Shown in pieces: positions 1-12,564 of a stretch of 12,564 bases of DNA. This stretch comes from Bugula neritina. Its lineage: Eukaryota > Animalia > Bryozoa. Position 1 is the stretch's first letter. Each line of letters opens with the position of its first letter. The stretch spans positions 1-12,564 of the forward strand of contig CAXIUT010000215.1 in NCBI GenBank assembly GCA_964035545.1, given 5' to 3'. The notes under the pieces were generated by a model, which did no database searches, had not been told where the DNA came from, and saw only the letters and a list, made by a program, of their open reading frames with translations. The position numbers and the translations under genes were made by a program.

Positions 1-87
1 CCCAACCCCAACCCCAACCCCAACCCCAACCCCAACCCCAACCCCAACCCCAACCCCAACCCCAACCCCAACCCCAACCCCAACCCC
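1..87 (-). repeat. Left telomere, (CCCCAA)n
   Basis: Perfect CCCCAA tandem array starting 5'-CCCAA; this is the Tetrahymena-type ciliate G4T2 repeat. Confidence 0.98.
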
Positions 88-340
88 TATTTATATGAAT
101 AATTTATATCTTAATATCTTCAAGAAAAATATCATTTATAAAGAAATTAAAGGAAATATGACATTTTTGATTTTTTTGACTTTTATAAGGATATTTTATA
201 ATCATGAATTATTAATTGATTCTTAATTTTTTATTTTAATAAAGTTTATAATATCTTTAAGATTTTTAATCATCATTAATTCACATAATAAAAAATCTTT
301 ATAATTTTTAGATAATAATAAAAGGTATCAGAGAGATATT

Positions 341-3300
341 TCAATCAAAATTTTTAATCATAGATCTGTTATTTTATCCTAAATCTAAATATTTTTCTTA
401 ATCTAAATTCATAGCACTACTATTAACTCTGGGTCTCTTTCTTTCTTCATAGAGAACAGTATCTCGATTACCTAACTTAGCATATTTCTTCTGCAAATAT
501 TCCAATTTATTTTGTACAAGATATTTTCTTCTTTCCTCCAAAAAGAAAAAAATCATTATTGTTATTATACAAGTTAATGCCAGTACAAGATAAACTACAA
601 TAACTGTGAAGAAAACTGAGTAAGTCTCTTCATCTCTTAGAAGGATTATTACTCCGATGAGAAAGGCTGTTGCGAATGGACAGATTGTAGTCAAAGTATT
701 TCTGAAAGTGATTGCAAATGAGTATGGAACTTCTAGATCGTAGTTATTTAGTACTTTGTAAGTATTCTATTCCATGTAGTTATCGCTATTTAATCTGTTA
801 ATATCGACAAAGAATCGGTCTGAGTGCAACATGAAAAACTACCAGAGAGTAAATCCCATTGAAACTAAGACTAGAATGGCAATAACTATCTAATTAGCTA
901 AAGAAATGAAACAGATAATTAGTGTTGCTGTGATTCTCCAGATGAAGAAGGGACTGAGGTACTTAGTTTATTTCCAGATAGAATAGCGACGAGCAATAAG
1001 AGCTGCTACAAAGCAAATTGCAAAGATAAAAATGATAAACATGCCGAATTGAGTGGCTTTGTAGTTAGCAACTATGTAGAGGAAGGAACTCCAGAAAGAG
1101 TGAAGGATTTTGACTTACATGATATCGATTGATAGTCTTACCATAAAATCTAGACGACTTTATTTGAGACCTATAAGGAAACGACTGACAAGATAAATAA
1201 TCAACATAAAAACAGCAAAGAAGATGATGGATCCCATAAGTCTAACGAAATCCATGTCTGGAGTATGTAAGAAGTAGCTGGCAAAGGTGTTTTGGGTATC
1301 TGATTTAGCAAGTTGTGCGTATAAGTTGGGAATGAAATCAAGGTTGCAGTATGAGCAACCTATCAGGAAGTAGAACGAGCGCTAGCCGACTGGAAAAGCT
1401 GAATAGATGAGTACTCCAAGTATTTGTACTATTCTAAAGACTTCTATCGTAAGTTAATAAACTCCTTTGATTTGTAGCAGAAAGAGGAAGACAGCTACTC
1501 CTAGGAAACCTGCCATGATGAGATGATAGTAGTTTCTAACTGAGTAAGTATAGTATTATTTCATGAGTTCTGGATGTTGGTTGATTTAAAACACTGTGGT
1601 GTAGTTGTTGTATCTGATTCCTTGTGAACTGTAGATAGTGGCTAAGAAAACGATTTGGAAGGATTTGTGGTAATCTAGTGAAGTTGGTAAATTAGTGGTA
1701 TAAGTGATTCGGTAGTTGGAGTATTTGAGGTTGCGAATCAAGAGAGTGGTGTTGGCTAGAGATCTTATTCCTTAGAATTAGTTTAGTTGTGAGTCTTTGT
1801 ATAAAATTTGCACTTAAGAATAACTATTGTATTTCATCCAGGTTTAACTAGTTGCATTCAGTCCATCTTGTGCCAAAATTGTATATTAAAGCAACTTGCC
1901 ATGACTGAGTACATGTACTTACTCCAATTTGAGTGAATACTAGTAGTTGGTGTTCGATAGATGAATGCAGGATCGGTTATCGAAGTTGGCTTAGTGCATT
2001 GAAGGACATATACTGATACAAGCTCCCCAGTAACTATAAGTGTAAATATCGCACATCTAGCATGCTCTTGTTAAATTATTCCAAGAGTATCCATCAGGAC
2101 ATGAAGCATAGCATCGGTTGTGGAAAAGATAGCGAGGTGAATTGGTGAAGCAGGCAGTGCAGTTAGTGGCTTATCCTTTGCAACTACTACATGATACATC
2201 ACAGAGATAGCATTATTGGTTGAAAGTGTTACTGTATTATCCATCAGGACATTTAGTTAGACAGATAGTGGTTCCATTAGCAAGGTAAAAACCTGGATTG
2301 CAGACAGTGCAAAAGTAGTTGGTAGTTGATGTGCTGAAACATCTAAGACACTGGAAAGCACAAGTATAACAGAAAATTGTGGTATTACCTCCTGAATTAT
2401 ATTAGTAGTGTCCATCGAGAGGACAGTGGCAGACGTGGTCGGTCATGTTGGCCCAGTAGTTACTCGGGCATGGAGAGGTGACGCAAGTATTATTGAAAAG
2501 AAATGACTAATTTCGACCTGAGGTGTAACATCTACTGCATCTGGTAGAACTGCTGCACTACATGCATAGACTGTTGCAGGTAACACAGTAGGTTTGATAG
2601 AATGCGGTGTAACCTGGCCATGTGGCTCCCGGTACTTATCCAATCAGATGGGTTGTGTAACTTAAGAAAGTTGCTTGTGGACAGGTGTTATAGCAAAGTC
2701 GATCTTAGTAGTTGAGGCTATATCCTCCTGAACATGACATGCATTTAGTGGCTGATGAGCAAGAGCTGCAGCCAGTTGGGCAGCGACTGACAAAGACGAT
2801 CATATCTCTGATTTCTATATATCTATTACCGCAGCAATTGACACTTTAACCTGCTAGTCCACAATTACAGCCCAAACTTGGAACTCCAAATCCTGTACAA
2901 GTTGCACCACAACAACAACTAAAGCAAAGACCGCATCCACCTCCTCCACACACATCTCCACAACTACAATCTCCAGTATCACAATCAGTATTCTATGGGA
3001 GACTCTCATTGATACTTCTCCATTTGACTGTTACATTTGGGTTGTAATGAGTAATTTTAGAACTGGTTACCACATCATAGCAACTCAGATACGAGAGAGT
3101 ACTTTGGTCGTATGTTTAGGTGTGTTCGTCTAGAGAGTAGGCTAAGGGGTAGTAGTTCTGGAGATTATCATTTTAGAAGAGGAAGATTCCGAATCTTATT
3201 CTTATTGCGTAGTGGGCAGCTAGCCCAGTGACGATGTGCATCATGTTGTTTTGAAGAGATGCTGCAGTGTTTCTTGGAGTTACGAGTGCTGAGTAGTATC

Positions 3301-3634
3301 CAAGGCGATGGACTTGAGCACCTGCAAGTAATGCAGTATCTCCATTGTTATAATTATAGTAGGCATGTTCTTATTCTGACTAGAAGAGATGAGGCACACA
3401 GTAATCAGTATCAGCTAGTGTGAAGAGTAGCGGATCACAAGATGTACAACCTCCGTTATCGGTTTGTCCTGCTGAACATTAACTTGTCAAACTGAAAGAA
3501 TTGATGCTGTAGCCGCAATAGGCAGTGCAAGGAGTAATGACTGAACATGTAGTTGCATAATCATTGGGAGCACTGAGTGTAGAAAAGACTAAAAGTGTTA
3601 AGATGATAAGATAGACAGTGTGGTTCTCTGGCAT
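341..3634 (-). CDS. Cys-rich (furin-like/growth-factor-receptor repeat) multi-pass membrane surface protein, 1097 aa
   Basis: One frame from ATG (3634) to TGA (341), 1098 codons, with TAA/TAG read as sense. N-terminal signal peptide (VYLIILTLLVFSTLS). Many CxxCxxC...CxxC...CPDGY repeats at about 1970-2790. About 8-10 hydrophobic segments at about 540-1530. Track ORF 398-694 is its C-terminal part. Confidence 0.9.
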
Positions 3635-3758
3635 GACTATGTTAATATAATTAGATTGGGAATTATCATCAATATTTCATGGTTTATGGATTTGAAATGA
3701 TCATATTTAAATAGAGTTTTATCAGTTTAAATTGAGTATTGGATTGTTTTGATTATCT
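3635..3758. promoter_or_regulatory. Putative bidirectional promoter spacer (124 bp)
   Basis: AT-rich gap between two divergent ATGs; inferred from position only. Confidence 0.5.
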
Positions 3759-5024
3759 ATGAATAAGTTATAATAAATAGGTAATATCTGTGGGTATAAG
3801 GTGTTTTTCTATCTTGATAAAACATCTCTAGAACTACATTACTATCAATAGTAGCATTCTGAGTTGAGATATAAAGCTGTTTTTCAAAAGAAATTGGTTG
3901 GTTCTACTAATCCAGAAGCTGCTCGTCAAGTTTTATAAGTTTTTGCTAAATCTTTTAAAAAGTTTGTAGATTATATCAAATCTTATTCCTAAGATCAACA
4001 GAGAGTATCAATAGGTAATCAGGGTGACTTCTATGTTATCCATTTTACAACTAAAATAAGAACAGCTAAGGCAAAGGCTATTTAATTCTAAGGTTAACAA
4101 TATATAACTAAAAGCGAACAAAAGGAGGATAAGGTGATCAAGAATTAGGTTCTCGATATCAGATAATAAAATAAATTATTGAAATAAATTGTAATGAAAC
4201 TTGAATATCAAGTCGAGCAGCAAGCCTATGAAATAAAATAATTAAAGAAAAACATCCTATTCAGCCAGAAAGAATATTTAGGAGATATCAAAGCTGATAG
4301 CAAAATGTTACCAATGTAAAATATGACTGTTAGATAGCATATAACAATGAAGCAATTGCAGTAGAATATAAGTACTATGAAGGATCAGATCAAGGGGTTG
4401 ATTCAGTGTGTTGGTCGTTAGAAATATAAGTTACCTGAAATGGCTAAGTATATTGGATAGGAAGATACTTTTTAAAGTTTGTAGAAATATGGAATAAGAC
4501 ATTATGTTATCATCGATACGAATAATATATATTTTGATGAGCATTTTAGAGCATAAGGCAATGTTCTAACTAAAATAGGAGTGTATAAATCTGTTCAGGT
4601 TCTTGGTCGTGATCCTTTTCCTTCTGATGGTCGTTATTTCTTTTCTTTGTTTATGAATAATATCACTGCTTCGATCTTTTCTGTTGGAATAATCAATCAA
4701 AATAGACGAAATTACTTAACGAGCTATGATAATCAGGATTGTATTGCTTTTTACGGTAGAAATGGTACGGTTTGGTAGAAGACAATTGAAAGAGGCGGAG
4801 GGGCAACTATTCCCAATGGGGTTGAGGTGAGGGTAGTAGTTGATTTTTTGAAGAAGATGGTCAAGTGGTATGAGAACGGAAGGGAGATAGGTTCGACGAT
4901 GATAGGGGAGCATTTGTTGAAGAAGAGACTTGTGCCTTATATTCAGATGAGTTATGTTGGTGATCAGGTTACTTTTAATGAAAGAGAGAGGCGGGTATAG
5001 AAATATAAGAAAGGGGTAAGTTGA
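3759..5024 (+). CDS. Coiled-coil protein with C-terminal SPRY/B30.2-like domain, 421 aa
   Basis: Single frame of 422 codons ending in TGA. Heptad-rich middle (IREENKLLKEIVMKLEYQVEQQAYEIKELKK). SPRY-like motifs GRYFFSL, FSVGII, VRVVVDFLKKMVKWYENG and LVPYIQM. Includes track ORF 4581-4778. Confidence 0.8.
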
Positions 5025-5137
5025 TATTTATAGTTGCTACTGATAAAATTATACTATTCAATATATATATAAGTTATTTTTACTAGTATAAAAGGCGGTT
5101 CAAATCGATAAGTAAATTTGAAATCGATAATAAAAAT

Positions 5138-6571
5138 ATGTCTTCAGCACAACAAAAAACTCAGGCAAGTCACCCGAACTTCGTCAAGTTATAGTAGGAA
5201 TTTATCCATGATTCTAACTAGTAGGTTGCTCGTCCTCCTGACCCTTAGATGGAGTAGCTACAGATGCTTTGTGAAAAGGAAAGTCGAAAGTTATAAAAGC
5301 AGGCTTATTTAGCTGCACTGGCTTAAGAGAAATAAAAGGAATAGAATAAGTAGAAGAAGGAGAAGAAGGATTGGACTCCTCTAAAAAATAAGAATAAGCA
5401 AGAAGTGAAGCTCTAGTCTATGGATTTCTCATAATCTATCTATGATCCTGATAGTTAGTAAGAATTGGAGTAATCTGAAATCGATTTGGGTGAGGATTCT
5501 TTTGAAGTTAGTGATAAGCTGGATTCTTAGATAATTAAAAATGTGAACAGTTTGATTAAAACCTTCTAGATAGAGTTAAAGCATCCTGAAACTAGACCTA
5601 AGAAAGTGCAAGAAATAGCACAGGTTTTGAATATTAGCCAAAATGCTGTTACTGATAAGATTAATAGCTATTTCAGAAGTAAAAGAAATAGTTCTTTCCA
5701 AGAATATAGGGAATCGAAGGATTATAGCAGAAACTAGCAAACGATATACAAGAAGACAGAGATGTTTGATGATGCGATTCGTAAGGTTTTGAAGAGTACT
5801 CCCTATGCTTGTATTAACGACCTTCGTAAATAGATATTAAAGAAACTTAATTTGGATTTGGCTAAGTAGACTTTGATAAGAAGACTTAAAAATTTGAACT
5901 ACAGCTATACTAAATTTGCCATAACCAAAAGTTTTAAAAATGATTAGAAATCGATTCAATTGAGACAGGCGTTTTTGAAATTATATCGATAGATATCTGA
6001 AAAGAGTCGTTATGTGTTATTTTATGGAACTGTGCATATGGCTTTGGATGAATGTCGGGGCAGTATGTGGATGAAAACAAAATAAAACGGGCAAATTGAA
6101 CATGCTCTCTCTTCTAGAGATATGGTGAGTATATCTTTGATTTTGGCACCTGATAGAATAGAATACTACAAAATCGATCATGGATTCTACAATTAGAACA
6201 CATTTATCTAAACAATAAAACAGTGGTTGGCTTTGCGTAGGTAGCGAACTTTCCCGAACAATCGCAAGAACCATCCCTATCTCTGTCTGTAAAGCAATTT
6301 GATTCATTATCAGAAAGGTTATCTGAATAATGAGGTTTAGGCTGAGTTGATAGATAACGATATAACAGCTGTTCCATTTCCAATAAATTCATCTGCGATG
6401 AATCCTGCTGAGATGTTGTTCCATCAGATCAAGTATGTGACTCGATCTCGGTTGAAGTTGATCAATATTGAGTAGATGTGTGAGGGGATAAGGAGTGTGG
6501 TGAAGGGAAATATCGATTTGGAGGACATTCGATTTGCTTATAATAAAATTTAAGATTTTGTTGGAATTTGA
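5138..6571 (+). CDS. IS630/Tc1/mariner-family transposase-derived protein, probably catalytically inactive, 477 aa
   Basis: Intact 478-codon frame. HTH KVQEIAQVLNISQNAVTDKINSY. Second HTH PYACINDLRKEILKKLNLDLAKETLIRRLKNLNYSYTK. Linker NDEKSIQLRQAF. C-terminal PFPINSSAMNPAEMLFHQIK matches the P-x-Y-S-P-x-L-N-P-I-E-x-x-W-x-x-x-K motif. No terminal inverted repeats seen. Confidence 0.8.
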
Positions 6572-6614
6572 GTGATTTTGGTTTTATTTTGATAATATTA
6601 ATGATATTATGTTA

Positions 6615-6689
6615 GGGGTTGGGGTTGGGGTTGGGGTTGGGGTTGGGGTTGGGGTTGGGGTTGGGGTTGGGGTTGGGGTTGGGGTTGGG
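6615..6689 (+). repeat. Internal telomeric tract, (GGGGTT)n
   Basis: Perfect 75-bp G4T2 array ending TTGGG, followed directly by unique sequence. Confidence 0.97.
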
Positions 6690-6713
6690 AAAGTAAGAAG
6701 AACACAGATAAAA

Positions 6714-7373
6714 TCAGTTATAGAATCCATCTAAATCATCTAGGCTTTTTTATCCTTTCATCGATGGAAATCTAATATCCATATTCCATTATTTCTCTTC
6801 TCCGACTTTGATACTTTAAACTTTCTACAAATCTTCATCATCTTCTTCTTCTTTCTCTTCAGCTACATCTTTATTTTAGCAGCCTTAACATTTACAACCT
6901 TAACTGCAACCAACTCCAGCGTTAAAGCATTAACAATATCTTTTCAGACAATGACTTTTTTTACAATTACATCTCTTCTATGACAACTTGCACGCTCTGG
7001 TACCTCCTTCTTTGATTCCTTGTTTGGCGTTTTGTATAACTTATTCGAATCCTACCATATTTTTGCAATTACAGCATGCGCAGTCGTCTCCGCACATTTT
7101 ACCTTGTGAAAAACATTCACAGTACATTTTGAGGCAGTTTGTTTTTTTGCACGTGCATCCGATTTTACGTTTTTTTGCTGAATTTGCTGCTGTATTAGCG
7201 AAGGAGATTCTTTATGCGAGGGAGTCTTATTGTACTAGGTCGAGGTTGTCGAGAGACGGAGGGGAGGGGAGGAGGTTATTGGTGTTGATGAGCTGCATGC
7301 TGAGGTTTCTATCAGGTAGTTTATCTAGAGACGGTAGGTTGAAGAACGATATTTTAGGGTTTGGGTCTGACAT
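6714..7373 (-). CDS. Tesmin/TSO1/LIN54-like CRC (CXC) domain protein, 219 aa
   Basis: 220 codons. Two CXC repeats, GCTCKKTNCLKMYCECFSQGKMCGDDCACCNCKN and CNCKKSHCLKRYC[TAA]CFNAGVGCSEGCKCEGCEN, followed by an acidic tail. Confidence 0.93.
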
Positions 7374-7577
7374 TGTAATAAAATTATATATGAACCTGTG
7401 TGATGCGTTTTATGTTCATTTAGGTAAGATATCAACTATGTTTAATTGATTTGATAAAAATTAAAGAAAAAATGTCTGTATTGATTTATAATAACTGGGT
7501 ATTAGCCACTACTTTTGTACAATTTAAGAATTCTTAAAGTTTTTTACTGATAAGATACTTAGATAACTCTAGAACGA

Positions 7578-7942
7578 TCATTCTTCAATAAGTGTATTGA
7601 TCCAGCTGACGCTGTTGGGTTAGGGTGATTCTCTTCTTTATAGTTGTTCTTCCCAAGGTTATTGACTGACCATTAGCAATACGAAGTTGGGGAAGGTGGT
7701 GGTATCATCTTTTGGTGTTGTGATATGGTCTGTTTGTAGTTGTGTTTGGTAGTTGTCGAGGAATTCTGTTTGGTAGAGAGTGAGGTAGGCGTTGTACTAC
7801 TTGGTTTGTAGATGGCAGCGGTTGCCTGGATAGGAAGAGGAGTACAGACAGTTCTGAAGGAGTAGTTATGGTTGTGGCAGAGTAGACATATCCAGTCGTC
7901 GTATTTAGGGGTGGTCCTAGTAGGGGTTTTCTTGTCGGGCAT
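7578..7942 (-). CDS. RanBP2-type zinc finger protein, 114 aa, one intron (7826-7845)
   Basis: Removing GTACTCCTCTTCCTATCCAG restores DWICLLCHNHNYSFRTVCNRC (W-x-C-x2-C-x3-N-x6-C-x2-C). The spliced length is 345 nt and ends in TGA. Confidence 0.88.
7826..7845 (-). other. 20-nt spliceosomal intron
   Basis: GTA...CAG; removal restores the zinc finger. Confidence 0.9.
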
Positions 7943-8110
7943 CAAATAAAATTATTATTTTGATTGGGATAGACAAATCTATCACCAACAGTTACTATCA
8001 ATATAAACCAGTCGTACACTTTTATTCCTAGTTTTTTTAAATCATTTCTTTAAATAACTATTCTTTATCTTTTTAATTTTTTTATCAATTATTTAAATAA
8101 GGTATGATGA

Positions 8111-9111
8111 TCAATGTTTCTTATTTTTTGTAAACTTGGTTCCTATTATGTAGTCCCATATTGGATTACTAACTCCAAAACCTGCTTCTTCACCTCCGAA
8201 GTGATGTTGGTTGTGATATTGCTGCAGTCTGTGGAAGAGCCCGCCTTTGTTATTTGAAGTATCGATGTGATGGAGGGAGTAGTGAGTTAGATCATAGGAT
8301 AGATAGCCCAAGTAGAAAGGAATACCCAAAAGAGCAAAGTAGGCTGGATCTTTGATAGGTATTAGAGGAACTAGGATAGGAACCAAAATTAAATTTTAGA
8401 TTATGAAGAGAACTGGTGGATGCACTAAACGATCGCTGGGTTAATTGATAATTACGGATCATTTGGTAGCATATGGTGAATTCCATGGAGGGCGTAGTGG
8501 AAATAACGGGCAAGTCTGTTATCAGGGAGCCATTTTTATGAGTGGAAGACGAAGCGGTGGAGGAGATATTCCATGAGAGTCCAGGTGAGGTATCCTGTTA
8601 GAAAGGTGAGCACTGCGTAGAAGGGATCGACATGTGACCATGATTCTACTCTATATATCAAGTAGGCCATGATCATGATTGGAACAACTAGGACATGAAA
8701 CCACTTGATGTGGGAGAAGGCTTCGAAGAAGTCAGTTTCGAACATGCGAGGTGTTGGGGTGAAGAGCCAGTGTGGTGAGTCAATTATTTTGAGGTAGTTT
8801 TAGTGATCAAGATTCCAGATTTGAGGCATAAGAGGTTGATCAGGAGAGATTGTTCTGCTGATTTACTTTTTGTATGATCCGATAATCATGGAATTGGCCA
8901 TAGTTAGGGAAAGAGGTTGATGGAATTTCATTTATTCATCGATTGTTTTGAGATTTTTGTGTTTGAGCATAACTCCTCCTCCAGGGTGATGTGATTGGAA
9001 AGATGAGATGTCGAGTATATAGTCATCAAAGATTACGAGAGTCTTTTATTTTTCTTTGGAGTAGTCTACAACTTCTTGATAGTTTTTGAATTTGATGTTG
9101 AGTTCGGTCAT
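8111..9111 (-). CDS. FA2H: Cytochrome b5-fused fatty acid/sphingolipid alpha-hydroxylase (FA2H/Scs7 family), copy A, 326 aa, one intron (8436-8455)
   Basis: b5 motif HHPGG. His boxes EYLLHRFVFH, HGIHH, YDLTHYSLHH and HNQHHF, then GFGVS..WD..IGT. 1001 nt minus a 20-nt intron gives 327 codons. Confidence 0.93.
8436..8455 (-). other. 20-nt spliceosomal intron
   Basis: GTAATTATCAATTAACCCAG; removal restores HHMLPNDPDRLV. Confidence 0.92.
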
Positions 9112-9259
9112 TCAACTTTTATTTTAATTATTTATACTATAGATGTCAGATAAATATCGATTTAACCTAACAATTCTAATTGATTTTTAGTTATTCTTCT
9201 AGATAATTGTATTAAATAGTTATTCTTAAAAACCGTTTTATTATTATGAAACAGAAAAA

Positions 9260-10260
9260 TCAATGCATCTTATTTTTTGTAAATTTAGTTCCAATTACAT
9301 AATCCCATATAGGACTGCTCACTCCGAATCCAGCTTCTTAGCCTCCGAAGTGATGTTGGTTGTGGTATTGTTGAAATTTATGGAAAAATCCATTTTTATT
9401 TTTTGATGTATCGATATGATGGAGAAAGTAGTGAGTGAAATCATATGAGATATATCCAAAGAAGAAAGCGATGAAAAAGAGGGCAAAATAAGCTGGATCT
9501 TTGATGGGAACTATTTGAATGATAATAGGAGATAAGACGAGGACAACTCCCATGGAGAAAGCAGGTGGGAATAATAAACGATCGCTGGGTTAATGGATAA
9601 TTACGGATCGTTTGGTATCATGTGATGGATTCCATGAAAGAGGTAGTGGAAGTAACGGGCTACTCGATTGTTTGGTAACTTTTTTTAGGAATGGAAGATG
9701 AAGCGGTGTAGAAGATATTCTAAGAGTGTCCAGAATAAATATCCTAAGATAGTGGTTAGTATGGCTAGTAAAGGGTTGACATGAGTCCAGGAATCGACTC
9801 TATAGTATAAGATAGCCATAAGGATGCAAGGAAAGGGTACGATATGGTACAATTTGACAGAAGTAAATGCTTCAAAGAAGTTCGAATCGAACATGCGAGG
9901 GGAAGCAGTGAAGAGCCAGTGTGGGGAATTAATAACTGTGAGGTAATCTTAGTGGTTAAGGTTCCAGATTTGGGGTAGGAGAGGTTGGTTAGGAGAGATT
10001 ATTCTACTGATTTAGTTTTTATAGGATCCGATAGTCATGGAATTGGCCATATTTAGGGAAAGAGGTTGGTGGAATTTCATTTATTCGTCAATAGTTTAGA
10101 GATTTTTGTGTTTGAGTAAAACTCCTCCTCCAGGGTGATGTGATTGGAAAGAGGTGACATCAAGAATGTTATCATCGAAGATAACAAGAGTCTTTTATTT
10201 TTATTTGGAGTAGTCTACAACTTCTTGGTAGTTTTTGAATTTGATGTTGAGTTCGGTCAT
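9260..10260 (-). CDS. FA2H: Cytochrome b5-fused fatty acid/sphingolipid alpha-hydroxylase (FA2H/Scs7 family), copy B, 326 aa, one intron (9585-9604)
   Basis: Colinear tandem paralog of copy A, offset 1149 bp, with the same length, intron position, HPGG motif and four His boxes. Confidence 0.93.
9585..9604 (-). other. 20-nt spliceosomal intron
   Basis: GTAATTATCCATTAACCCAG, at the same position as in the paralog. Confidence 0.92.
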
Positions 10261-10482
10261 TCAACTTTTATGGGATTATTATCTTAAAAATATGACATCA
10301 GGTTAAATTATCGATCTTAGGAAGTTAAAAATGATTTACTTTAAGTTGAAGTAATGAGAATAAATATTTCAGAAGTTGATTATTTTATCATAAAATAATC
10401 TAATAAAAATCGATGGTTATTTATACTTTATATGATTGAATGGTAGATCTTGTTTTGAATTGAACCTATTGTTATAATTTTA
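10261..10482. promoter_or_regulatory. Putative bidirectional promoter spacer (222 bp)
   Basis: AT-rich gap between divergent FA2H-B and the C2H2 gene, with ATCGAT at 10310 and 10409. Confidence 0.5.
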
Positions 10483-11183
10483 ATGAGTGAGGAGGATAGT
10501 GGAATTAACCCTGAACCTGCTATTAGAACTAAAGAGTAAGCTTAGAGAAAATTTGGTTGTCCTTGTGGCAAGTGGTATCTCTCCTATCCAGCTCTCTTTA
10601 CACACGTCAAGCAAAAGCACGAAGGAAAAGTACTTTATCCTAACTTAGCCTCCTGGAGCCCTAATCAAACCGAAAACTGACAAAGCTAGAGGTAGACCTA
10701 GACTGCCAATCAATGTATATACTATTTTATACTAAGAACGCTTAGTAAGATGTTTCGATAGCTCATTACGATTGCGTTTAGTAGTTGTAGAAGGCGATTA
10801 TGAGTAAATAGGTGGAATATGAGGGATAATTTGAGTATAGTGAGGGAAATGAGAGTTGTCAGGACATGGCAAGTCAATTTTTGAGGATAATGGGTGGGAC
10901 GGCAGAGTAGAAGAAAATTTTATCATGTTTTATGAACTATATCAGATTCTTTGTGAAAAAGAAATATGAGGATTCTTATTGGGAGACACATAAACCTGTG
11001 GACATCATTGATATATCGAACTAGATAGTCAGGGAATTGGAACATCATCGAGAACTATTTCCGATGGATAAGGAGTTGTTGATTGATTTGTTGTATGTGT
11101 TGTTCAGATGGATGTATAAGAACAAGTGGACTGATCATAAGTTGGTTCGAAGGAGTTCTGAGGGTGAGGGTAGCAAGGGGTGA
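10483..11183 (+). CDS. C2H2-type zinc finger plus AT-hook protein, 219 aa, introns 10630-10648 and 10715-10736
   Basis: CPCGKWYLSYPALFTHVKQKH resembles the ciliate CGCGKxYLSYPALYTHxKxKH family. AT-hook RGRPR. Exons of 147+66+447 nt give 220 codons ending in TGA. Confidence 0.85.
10630..10648 (+). other. 19-nt spliceosomal intron
   Basis: GTACTTTATCCTAACTTAG; removal joins the zinc finger to the AT-hook in frame. Confidence 0.8.
10715..10736 (+). other. 22-nt spliceosomal intron
   Basis: GTATATACTATTTTATACTAAG; removal restores the frame into the 149-codon last exon. Confidence 0.75.
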
Positions 11184-11270
11184 TATTTCATAGTTGGTCT
11201 TTTTGAATCATTCATATTGATAGTTGATTTATTTTAATCAATATTATGTTGTATTATTTGAATAATAACA

Positions 11271-11899
11271 ATGTAGTTGGATCGACAGGAAGGCGACAAG
11301 GGGAAATAGAAATTTATCAAACTGATGTTGAATTTGACTCAGTACAATATACTAGATACAGGTTGATAATAGAGGACTCATCGCATCAGCGAACAATTTA
11401 TGAATGTTTGAATTCTCAATAGATAAAAAGTTTATTTGAGAGCATTCATGATGAAGATTCTTAGATACGGATGACGGCTATTCGATTTGTTTGTCTTTTG
11501 TTGGCAAATAATGCTAAAATAATTGAGTTGATGGGTGTGCTGGAGGGAAGTGAACATGCTTCTGGATTAAGAAAAGTATGATCATGGTTATGTAAGTATG
11601 TGGTGGGAGGTCTGGATTACTATAAATTATCTTTTGGCGATCTCAAGCGTAACTTTTCTATAAAATAGACAGAAGTAGTATTGGCAATGAGTTCACTCAA
11701 ATATCAACAGGGAAGTCTCGCTTGGGCTATCAATCTCAAAAACTTTAAAATCAGTTATTATGGAACAAACAAAGGATAACTGAGTGAATCATTTCAGTAT
11801 GATCCTAATAGTAATTTGGTGGGTATATTCGTCAAAGGAGGTGAGGTGTAGGAGGCAGATCGCAAGGATGGGAGACGATACAAGATAAGCAAGAAGTGA
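11271..11899 (+). CDS. Hypothetical protein with an ARM/HEAT-like helical segment, 195 aa, introns 11342-11361 and 11576-11596
   Basis: Exons of 71+214+303 nt give 196 codons. Both GTA...AG mini-introns are needed to avoid TGA. SLFESIHDEDSEIRMTAIRFVCLLL is HEAT-like. Confidence 0.68.
11342..11361 (+). other. 20-nt spliceosomal intron
   Basis: GTACAATATACTAGATACAG; the unspliced frame hits TGA immediately afterwards. Confidence 0.7.
11576..11596 (+). other. 21-nt (3n) spliceosomal intron with in-frame TGA
   Basis: GTATGATCATGGTTATGTAAG. Confidence 0.68.
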
Positions 11900-11963
11900 A
11901 AATTGATCGTTATTGATAGATCGTTATGGATCATAGATAGTAAATAATAGATTGTATTTGAAT

Positions 11964-12377
11964 ATGAGTAAAATGGTGGGTAAGAAGGGAACTTTCTTTG
12001 ATAAATGTTAGTAAATAAGAAAAACCAATCGCAGACATGTGTCTTCCATTTATACTTAATTTACTCATCTTCGTTTCTCTTAAATTTACAAACAGTATGA
12101 AGGCAATATGGCTCGGAGCAAGTAAATGAATTAAGTTATTGAGAAGGAAAGAGCGCAGTTGGTATCTTTTGGGTGTATGGCGAATTATGAGTAGCTATAG
12201 CGGTGTCATAAGACGGAGGAGAGGAAGGAGAGGTTTAGAAATTTGATGGGTTTTGCTCAAGATTTAGCAGAGGAAAAGGCAATAAAGAAGGTATCGATAT
12301 TGAATACGATTGGAGATGTTCAGAGGATGAAAGTTTTTCATAAAAAATTACTTGATTCAGTTGCTACAGTCGAATGA
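11964..12377 (+). CDS. Hypothetical charged helical protein, 137 aa
   Basis: 138-codon frame from ATG to TGA, flanked by AT-rich spacers; no recognisable domain. Confidence 0.65.
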
Positions 12378-12453
12378 TAACTATTGTGATATGTATATCA
12401 GCTGAATTAAAAAACTATTTAACTCTTGCTAATTTCAGTTAAATCTTCAAATA

Positions 12454-12564
12454 GGGGTTGGGGTTGGGGTTGGGGTTGGGGTTGGGGTTGGGGTTGGGGT
12501 TGGGGTTGGGGTTGGGGTTGGGGTTGGGGTTGGGGTTGGGGTTGGGGTTGGGGTTGGGGTTGGG
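12454..12564 (+). repeat. Right telomere, (GGGGTT)n
   Basis: Perfect G4T2 array to the end of the sequence, terminating TTGGG. Confidence 0.98.

Follow-up and report, generated by a model that had tools for sequence, protein, structure and literature searches.

We analysed a stretch of 12,564 nucleotides (nt; hereafter the window), positions 1 to 12,564 of contig CAXIUT010000215.1 in assembly GCA_964035545.1, deposited under the name Bugula neritina, and focused on one open reading frame (ORF) at 5138-6571 on the forward strand. We consider it most probable (roughly 0.8) that this ORF is a host gene of Tc1-family transposase origin, fixed at one locus, kept by purifying selection and encoding a protein that probably does not cut DNA and instead binds DNA and oligomerises. 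The gene has Tc1 ancestry, its product an RNase H-like fold with a degenerate catalytic triad, and its orthologues are syntenic and under purifying selection. A Tc1-derived gene would have become fixed at one chromosomal locus in the ancestor of several ciliates that read TAA and TAG as glutamate, and purifying selection would have maintained it from then on. The likeliest mechanism would be sequence-specific DNA binding through the helix-turn-helix (HTH) domains, with the dead catalytic domain oligomerising through contacts with a second copy or with a partner. The acidic N-terminal extension, which is lineage-specific, may act as an effector or interaction arm. The parts of the gene are listed below, where A1 denotes the Tc1 reference alignment and L243 one of three orthologous loci, all introduced in the following sections.

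5138..6571, forward strand: whole gene, 477 sense codons and a TGA; Tc1-derived and probably non-catalytic, from profile matches and orthologues
5138..5566, forward strand: N-terminal acidic extension, residues 1-143; net charge about -19; outside the Tc1 fold; found in all four orthologues
5567..5734, forward strand: first HTH, PAI-like, residues about 144-199; poorly conserved; aligned by hhalign to A1 columns 28-52, with weak generic HTH matches in Pfam
5735..5923, forward strand: second HTH, RED-like, of HTH_Tnp_Tc3_2 type, residues 200-262; the most conserved block
5993..6121, forward strand: beta1 and clamp-loop equivalent, residues 286-328; G297 at 6026-6028; VHMALDECRGSMWMK invariant in four species
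6290..6292, forward strand: second catalytic position, TAA codon 385, Glu (LCL-E-SNLIH); profile column D at 0.83
6410..6412, forward strand: third catalytic position, E425 of NPAE; Asp in the L243 orthologue

Tc1 ancestry and the reading of TAA and TAG

An initial annotation of this DNA had described a 477-residue ORF free of internal TGA at 5138-6571, which we confirmed: the frame has 477 codons, 31 of them TAA or TAG (10 TAA, 21 TAG), and TGA occurs solely at its end. Its use of TAA and TAG resembles that of the neighbouring host genes. To place the protein, we fetched 120 metagenomic Tc1 loci by the motif WPxxSPDLNPIExxW, from which we built a 40-sequence profile and a 24-sequence alignment (A1), and 120 bacterial IS630 loci by the motif PYSPELNPIE. 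A1 proved a valid reference, matching Sleeping Beauty SB100X (5cr4) at E 3.6e-86 as well as Mos1, SETMAR, Tc3 and Pax paired domains, and members of the Tc1 reference carry Pfam HTH_Tnp_Tc3_2 and DDE_3. A phmmer search with the single ORF against the 240 fetched loci returned nothing significant, and a profile was therefore needed. Against the 40-sequence Tc1 profile, the ORF protein scored 36.0 bits in HMMER, and the best of 500 shuffles reached 7.2 bits. With hhalign, it aligned to the Tc1 profile over 307 columns at a probability of 97% (P 1.9e-11, score 80.5); 60 shuffled sequences averaged 15.2 (standard deviation [sd] 2.9, maximum 27.5) and the reversed sequence scored 16.9. Identity between the window protein and the Tc1 profile is about 16%.

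The two parts of the protein were also recognised separately by hhalign. The DNA-binding part (residues 144-285) matched profile columns 21-145 at P 1.3e-7, and the DDE part (286-477) matched at P 9.5e-6. Profile columns of the HTH part also match the Tc3, Sleeping Beauty PAI/RED and Pax structures. Among stop-free pieces compared with A1, residues 402-445 fell on the WPxxSPDLNPIExxW columns (P 3.2e-5) and residues 145-199 on the first-HTH columns 28-52 (P 1.5e-5), the two being colinear, and the beta1 piece alone (286-315) gave no match. In the ESM Atlas, 57 of the 60 matches to residues 402-445 were DDE_3/IS630 fragments (score 0.95); residues 317-352 found no match there, and the HTH piece found generic TFIIB-repeat fragments only. 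Pfam returned weak generic HTH matches and no DDE_3 for the window's stop-free pieces, each of which holds at most 8.4 bits of family signal. The acidic extension (residues 1-143) had no match to the Tc1 profile in hhalign, and with TAA and TAG read as Glu it comprises 30 E, 10 D, 19 K and 2 R, in agreement with the charged, acidic N-terminal extension of the initial annotation.

The same annotation had proposed an IS630/Tc1 origin. The superfamily stands, but the affinity lies with eukaryotic Tc1 more than with bacterial IS630. A profile of the four-species family matched the Tc1 profile at P 6.7e-14 versus 7e-6 for bacterial IS630. The ORF protein by itself matched a trimmed bacterial IS630 profile at P 1.8e-4 in hhalign (score 31.7; shuffle mean 12.9, sd 2.2), and with a first, untrimmed IS630 profile it scored no higher than shuffles in hmmsearch. 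Judged by these alignments, the protein is nearer to eukaryotic Tc1 than to bacterial IS630, and the gene is a full-length homologue of Tc1-type transposases with an added N-terminal extension, within the IS630-Tc1-mariner superfamily (DDE_3 PF13358, HTH_Tnp_Tc3_2 PF01498).

Reading the frame correctly depends on TAA and TAG, for which the DNA offers direct evidence. We compared contigs of four public runs (X1-X4) with window positions 650-6612. X1 and X2, which share an organism label, carry a slightly different haplotype from the window. Differences in X1 were itemised in full for 3000-6612, with 6 in the ORF and 15 in the upstream gene (3753-5024); the X2 contig over 5350-6612 has 28 differences, 5 of them itemised. 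If TAA and TAG encode Glu, 19 of the 21 X1 differences are synonymous. They include one change in the ORF, TAG270 to GAG, and two in the gene upstream (TAA115 to GAA, GAG155 to TAG), and none of the 21 exchanges TAA or TAG with the Gln codons CAA and CAG. Runs X3 and X4 were considered as divergent orthologues and rejected, being near-identical, low-coverage fragments of the same species.

Alignments agree with the allelic exchanges. Within invariant blocks of the orthologues, TAA and TAG codons of the window face Glu encoded by GAR codons, as in LAKETLIRR (LAK-E-TLIRRLKNL), KENG and IEGNLIH (I-E-xNLIH). Glu is the commonest residue in the Tc1 profile column at 7 of 12 aligned TAA/TAG sites. 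The HMMER score is 36.0 bits when these codons are read as Glu, 33.4 as Gln and 25.9 as X. Because the allelic swaps, the orthologue alignment and the profile scores coincide, we conclude that TAA and TAG both encode Glu in this genome. Ciliates that read the two codons as Glu point to peritrichs, whose nuclear code is NCBI table 30 (TAA/TAG to Glu). This direct allelic and orthologue evidence, drawn from ordinary genes, is a by-product of the analysis.

Orthologues, synteny and selection

An exhaustive HMMER search of 1.84 billion representative proteins with residues 402-445 returned three fragments only (E 3.5e-7 to 1.1e-4). Full-length frames with in-frame TAA/TAG and TGA as sole stop were present at three loci: L241 in the Logan assembly of run SRR31257600, L242 in ENA metagenome ERZ724527 and L243 in NCBI assembly GCA_020049755.1, on a contig that ends in GGGGTT repeats. 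Compared with the window protein, the encoded proteins show 43-49% identity; among themselves they show 49-60%. GC content ranges from 33% to 55% across the contigs, and they therefore represent different organisms. A word-index search for homologues of a 44-residue piece gave no candidate, and a metagenome scan with a 55-residue piece gave no relative. As a separate observation, the beta1-to-beta3 segment had sub-threshold Pfam matches to DUF613 (PF04764) in L241 (1887-2066, E 0.053) and L242 (813-1010, E 0.0014).

Conservation is distributed unevenly along the protein. We expressed it by region as the share of alignment columns that are invariant across the four proteins:

Residues 200-262, second HTH: 78% invariant columns
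Residues 286-328, beta1 and clamp-loop segment: 49% invariant columns
Residues 401-477, C-terminal part: 38% invariant columns
Residues 329-400, catalytic core: 25% invariant columns
Residues 1-143, N-terminal extension: 13% invariant columns
Residues 144-199, first HTH: 7% invariant columns

The second HTH and the clamp-loop equivalent have thus been under the strongest selection. In Mos1, the Tc1/mariner clamp loop mediates contacts between subunits.

The orthologues share more than sequence. The gene is flanked in the window by the following features:

341-3676, reverse strand: Cys-rich neighbour gene, 1,111 codons, with a multi-pass membrane C-terminus; orthologue in L243
3753-5024, forward strand: SPRY neighbour gene, 423 codons, with a C-terminal SPRY-like domain (weak Pfam matches); orthologue in L243
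5025..5137, forward strand: 5' intergenic region, 113 bp, with two copies of AAATCGATAA (5101-5110 and 5120-5129) and no terminal inverted repeat
6572..6689, forward strand: 3' flank and telomere, 43 bp (6572-6614) followed by (GGGGTT)x12.5 (6615-6689), the end of a 6.7-kb chromosome at 1-6689

In L243, the Tc1-like gene (47% identical) is accompanied by the Cys-rich membrane gene (44%) and the SPRY gene (50%), and the three match window 344-6568 in order and orientation. L241 retains the SPRY gene (52%) together with the Tc1-like gene, and the L242 contig is too short to reach neighbouring genes. The initial annotation had stressed that the gene lies 43 bp from a telomere. The distance is right, as the G4T2 tract begins 43 bp past the end of the ORF, but it is not a conserved feature, since a Rer1-like gene separates the L243 orthologue from its telomere.

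Divergence between and within species indicates purifying selection. Between species, the proportion of synonymous differences (pS) is 0.75-0.95, which is saturated, versus a nonsynonymous proportion (pN) of 0.26-0.42. Within the species, all 6 X1 differences in the ORF are synonymous, for which the probability under neutrality is 7e-5 (6e-4 when transition-weighted), given that about 20% of sites are synonymous. The sole X1 indel in the ORF, also present in X2, is an in-frame 12-nt insertion (AAAAAATAAATC) after 5382 in the Lys/Asn-rich part of the N-terminal extension, a low-complexity coding stretch that is thus polymorphic in length. Contig depth over the gene is even with that over its neighbours, and a single syntenic locus is seen in the window, L241 and L243. 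The Tc1-like gene has evolved at about the rate of its neighbours since the species split, at one locus.

The flanks lack the marks of a mobile element. The TGA of the upstream gene ends at 5024, leaving 113 bp before the ORF, and no inverted repeat pairs 5025-5137 with 6572-6614, so that no terminal inverted repeats (TIRs) surround the gene; both the flank lengths and the absence of TIRs in the initial annotation were correct. The gene sits directly between a host gene and a telomere, which is not the layout of an active transposase, with TIRs and a TA target-site duplication. Synteny, purifying selection and the lack of terminal repeats together imply domestication. Host domestication, as proposed at the outset, is thus well supported, with three full-length orthologues, two of them syntenic, saturated synonymous sites and a Gly common to all four proteins at the first catalytic position.

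Catalytic positions, fold and probable function

Three alignment methods were used to locate the catalytic residues, and they reproduced the placements of the initial annotation with one ambiguity. HMMER, hhalign with both profiles and MAFFT agreed in placing G297 (codon GGA, 6026-6028, in VLFYGT) on the first Asp, T298 on the following Glu and W311, 14 residues beyond G297, on the conserved Trp. At the second position, HMMER and hhalign against bacterial IS630 placed Glu385 (TAA, 6290-6292) on the second Asp and H390 on the invariant His five residues on. The alignment by hhalign to Tc1 profiles is shifted by one residue, with S386 on the Asp, and MAFFT misaligns the region. The canonical second Asp is missing, as neither placement puts an Asp there. 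All three methods placed N422, P423 and E425 (6410-6412) on the N-P-x-E motif. In the HMMER alignment, G297, Glu385 and E425 fall on profile columns D (0.66), D (0.83) and E (0.81), which correspond to D153, D244 and E279 of Sleeping Beauty (residue numbers from PMC4820933). Codons 385 and 425 are separated by 39 residues, instead of 34, because of a five-residue insertion after H390.

No member of the family has a complete acidic triad: Gly occupies the first position in all four proteins, including those of L241, L242 and L243, with Glu at the second and either Glu or Asp at the third. The second-position Glu is encoded by a GAR codon in L241 and L242 and by TAA or TAG in L243, and the third position is Glu except in L243 (NPAD). 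The initial annotation had offered the LDE motif at 6044-6052 (codons 303-305, with D304 and E305) as an alternative first acidic site. We disfavour this because the motif aligns to the start of the clamp loop, after beta1. In Sleeping Beauty, the clamp loop spans residues 159-190, between beta1 and beta2 and starting six residues past D153, and makes subunit contacts (PMC4820933). By this numbering, LDECRGSMWMK would be the first arm of the clamp loop. LDE belongs to the invariant set, and VHMALDECRGSMWMK is identical in all four proteins. We also considered whether a 21-nt intron might be concealed here, whose removal would convert VLFYGTVHMALDE to VLFYDE. This was rejected, as the segment lacks GT..AG ends, W311 is already at +14 without a gap, and the seven residues are kept in all four orthologues.

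For the fold, we used AlphaFold2 to model the stop-free core of orthologue L241, 169 residues long, with an input alignment that combined orthologue pieces and Tc1 references. The fold evidence is accordingly modelled on the orthologue's core and applied to the window protein by alignment. The model (mean predicted local distance difference test score [pLDDT] 71.7, predicted template-modelling score [pTM] 0.66) has the canonical RNase H-like order beta1-beta2-beta3-alpha-beta4-alpha-beta5-alpha. Within the modelled piece, beta1 spans residues 8-17 and has the first-position Gly (residue 12) at its middle; the second-position Glu (residue 109) closes beta4, and NPAE starts the helix after beta5. 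The invariant Asp-Glu pair follows immediately after beta1, where the confidence of the model is low. The 11 best Foldseek matches to the model in the Protein Data Bank were all Tc1/mariner catalytic domains (SETMAR 3k9j, Mos1 and Sleeping Beauty 5cr4 among them), with SETMAR 3k9j at the top (E 3.1e-5, template-modelling score 0.57), and retroviral integrases and RNase H ranked below Tc1/mariner. The two HTH modules and DDE-type fold of the initial annotation are thereby substantiated, as the Tc1 profile covers both and the L241 core model is RNase H-like.

Loss of catalysis is likely. The first Asp is gone, the third position alternates between Glu and Asp even though E279D inactivates Sleeping Beauty (PMC4820933), and the core is moderately conserved. 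With Gly, Glu and Glu or Asp at the three positions, the protein most likely no longer cuts DNA.

Several points weigh against a non-cutting host protein of Tc1 descent. The best Pfam matches of stop-free orthologue pieces fall short of their cut-offs, with DDE_3 at 22.0 bits versus 28.6 for the L241 169-residue core (E 1.6e-4) and HTH_Tnp_Tc3_2 at 19.0 versus 31.5 for an L243 piece (E 1.7e-3). In the model, pLDDT falls below 50 in the beta1-beta2 hairpin, and the fold match is only partly independent of the sequence evidence because the model's alignment held Tc1 homologues. The case for lost catalysis rests on alignment and secondary-structure placement. All four species retain an acidic residue at the second and third positions, and seven residues past the Gly there is an invariant Asp-Glu pair, so that room is left for an unusual active site. 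Lastly, none of the RNA runs contained the gene.

Within the preferred reading of a domesticated DNA-binding protein, we tentatively entertain a more specific role, the one put forward in the initial annotation: the protein would take part in programmed DNA elimination or chromosome fragmentation as a partner or guide that is itself non-catalytic. The HTHs would bind the Tc1-like ends of eliminated DNA, or other cis-signals, and recruit or regulate an excisase, much as PiggyMac-like proteins work with PiggyMac in Paramecium, the analogy drawn in that annotation. The conserved DNA-binding and clamp-loop blocks would suit such a scaffold or guide, and in Blepharisma all six somatic DDE_3 genes, the one lacking a full triad included, show strong up-regulation while the new macronucleus develops. 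The present locus, however, shows no developmental link, the gene being in no RNA run. It also has no excisase or small-RNA-pathway gene nearby; its neighbours encode a SPRY protein and a Cys-rich membrane protein. Domesticated Tc1/mariner/pogo proteins elsewhere have unrelated roles, as exemplified by CENP-B, SETMAR and the Pax paired domain. It is doubtful, if attractive, that the nearly invariant RED-like HTH reads Tc1-type ends or breakage signals while the clamp-loop surface recruits the excisase, which would make the protein a Tc1-lineage counterpart in peritrichs of the PiggyMac-like proteins.

We regard it as unlikely that the protein is a still-active nuclease or recombinase, using Glu385 and E425 with D304 or E305, or with a residue from a partner subunit. 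Such an enzyme would account for the acidic second and third positions in all four species, where a Glu/Asp exchange keeps the charge, and for the invariance of LDE. It is difficult to reconcile with a Gly at the first position of every orthologue, in the middle of beta1 in the model, and with an Asp-Glu pair that comes after beta1 has ended, at the point, six residues past D153, where Sleeping Beauty begins its clamp loop. The orthologues also vary between Glu and Asp at the position where E279D makes Sleeping Beauty inactive, and the core (329-400) is among the less conserved parts, with one quarter of its columns invariant.

Finally, a decaying transposon remnant that escaped somatic elimination, intact by chance or through recent insertion, is highly improbable: long open frames do arise easily in a genome where TGA is the sole stop, but the gene occupies the same syntenic locus across species with saturated synonymous sites, retains invariant blocks of 15-50 residues, differs from the X1 allele at six sites that are all synonymous, lacks TIRs and uses TAA and TAG as neighbouring host genes do.

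Chromosomal setting and known systems

Telomere tracts occur at three places in the window: (CCCAAC)x14.5 at 1-87, (GGGGTT)x12.5 at 6615-6689, which is internal and in a single orientation, and (GGGGTT)x18.5 at 12454-12564. The tracts at 1-87 and 6615-6689 imply that 1-6689 is a complete 6.7-kb telomere-to-telomere molecule. Positions 1-6689 and 6690-12564 look like two molecules joined in assembly, or else an alternative fragmentation form. The DNA at 6690-12564 has no synteny with that downstream of the L243 orthologue, where a Rer1-like gene is followed by the telomere (L243 4250-4968). It holds two tandem paralogous genes on the minus strand (7942-9111 and 9260-10260) with a cytochrome-b5 HPGG motif and fatty-acid-hydroxylase His boxes, and frame shifts within them suggest very short introns. 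The X1 and X2 contigs extend past 6612, the end of the compared stretch. Both also join 5692, within the ORF, back to 4161, within the SPRY gene, with 14 other letters between (AAATTTAATAACTA), and X2 has an additional 5692-to-5675 joint. The 5692-4161 joint may reflect chance overlap of A-rich sequence, a paralogous locus or an arrangement of the germline.

Two short sequence features were observed around the gene. ATCGAT is concentrated at 5101-6517, which has 7 of the 17 copies in the window, and accounts for 7 of 31 CG dinucleotides in that locus versus 10 of 185 elsewhere. The copies lie in differing reading frames, and two copies of AAATCGATAA are directly upstream of the ATG. We rejected ATCGAT as a conserved regulatory or binding motif, as it is absent from all three orthologue loci and hence species-specific. 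The 5' intergenic regions of L241 (985-1052) and L243 (2765-2836) share a long stretch, AAAATAAGCATACTTATATA.ATAGCGGGTAA ... CTAGCTTATAATTC.AAAA, right before the ATG, with only a loose counterpart in the window (TATAAAAGGCGGTTCAA). This conserved stretch is a candidate promoter or 5' untranslated region (5'-UTR) element.

In the literature, we found no description of the present family, nor of any peritrich transposase-derived gene. In the ciliates studied so far, domesticated transposases drive programmed genome rearrangement, those of Paramecium and Tetrahymena being PiggyBac-derived. Every ciliate somatic genome examined also contains further transposase-derived genes with no assigned role (PMC9942806). 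The closest parallel is Blepharisma stoltei, with six somatic (macronuclear) DDE_3 transposase-derived genes (PMC9942806; bioRxiv 10.1101/2021.12.14.471607). These too are ciliate somatic genes of IS630/Tc1 type without flanking terminal repeats, read as domesticated, and one of the six lacks the full triad. They differ in that five of the six keep the DDE triad and are reported to be nearer to bacterial IS630, whereas the peritrich family is nearer to Tc1 (P 6.7e-14 versus 7e-6), lacks the first Asp in every member and has a 143-residue acidic N-terminal extension. Developmental up-regulation is a feature of the Blepharisma genes, while the present family is known from DNA sequence alone.

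Among ciliate transposases of Tc1/IS630-type DDE architecture, Oxytricha TBE and Euplotes Tec have likewise been discussed in genome rearrangement. By description, these are germline-limited, high-copy and bounded by terminal repeats, unlike the single somatic gene at a conserved locus found here. The Paramecium PiggyMac-like proteins PgmL1-5 are also domesticated ciliate transposases and catalytically incomplete, and their role as partners of the active excisase has been shown experimentally (PMC6143343). They belong to the PiggyBac superfamily rather than Tc1/mariner, and the present protein is known from its sequence.

Outside ciliates, Sleeping Beauty SB100X (5cr4) and Tc3 (1u78) have the same succession of PAI-like HTH, RED-like HTH, linker and RNase H-like core, in which beta1 and beta2 are separated by a clamp loop. 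Their DNxxxH-type and NPxE motifs are recognisable here as ESNLIH and NPAE. Departures from them are the Gly in place of the first Asp, the Glu in place of the second, a spacing of 39 rather than 34, the lack of a glycine-rich strip and of TIRs, the single syntenic locus and the extra acidic N-terminus. SETMAR (Metnase; 3k9j), a domesticated Hsmar1, is a host gene of the same superfamily with an altered triad and retained DNA binding, the last being predicted for our protein. It is of mariner type (DDD to DDN) and fused to a SET domain, whereas the present gene, of Tc1 type, no longer has the first Asp and is not fused to an enzymatic domain. SETMAR keeps its first Asp and some nuclease activity.

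The kind of gene is therefore already known, with the Blepharisma genes, SETMAR and CENP-B as precedents. To these we add a well-documented peritrich case, an orthologous, syntenic, Tc1-derived gene under strong selection. Its conservation is centred on one HTH and the clamp loop, not on the catalytic core, which makes the protein a testable candidate for a DNA-recognition or scaffold factor.

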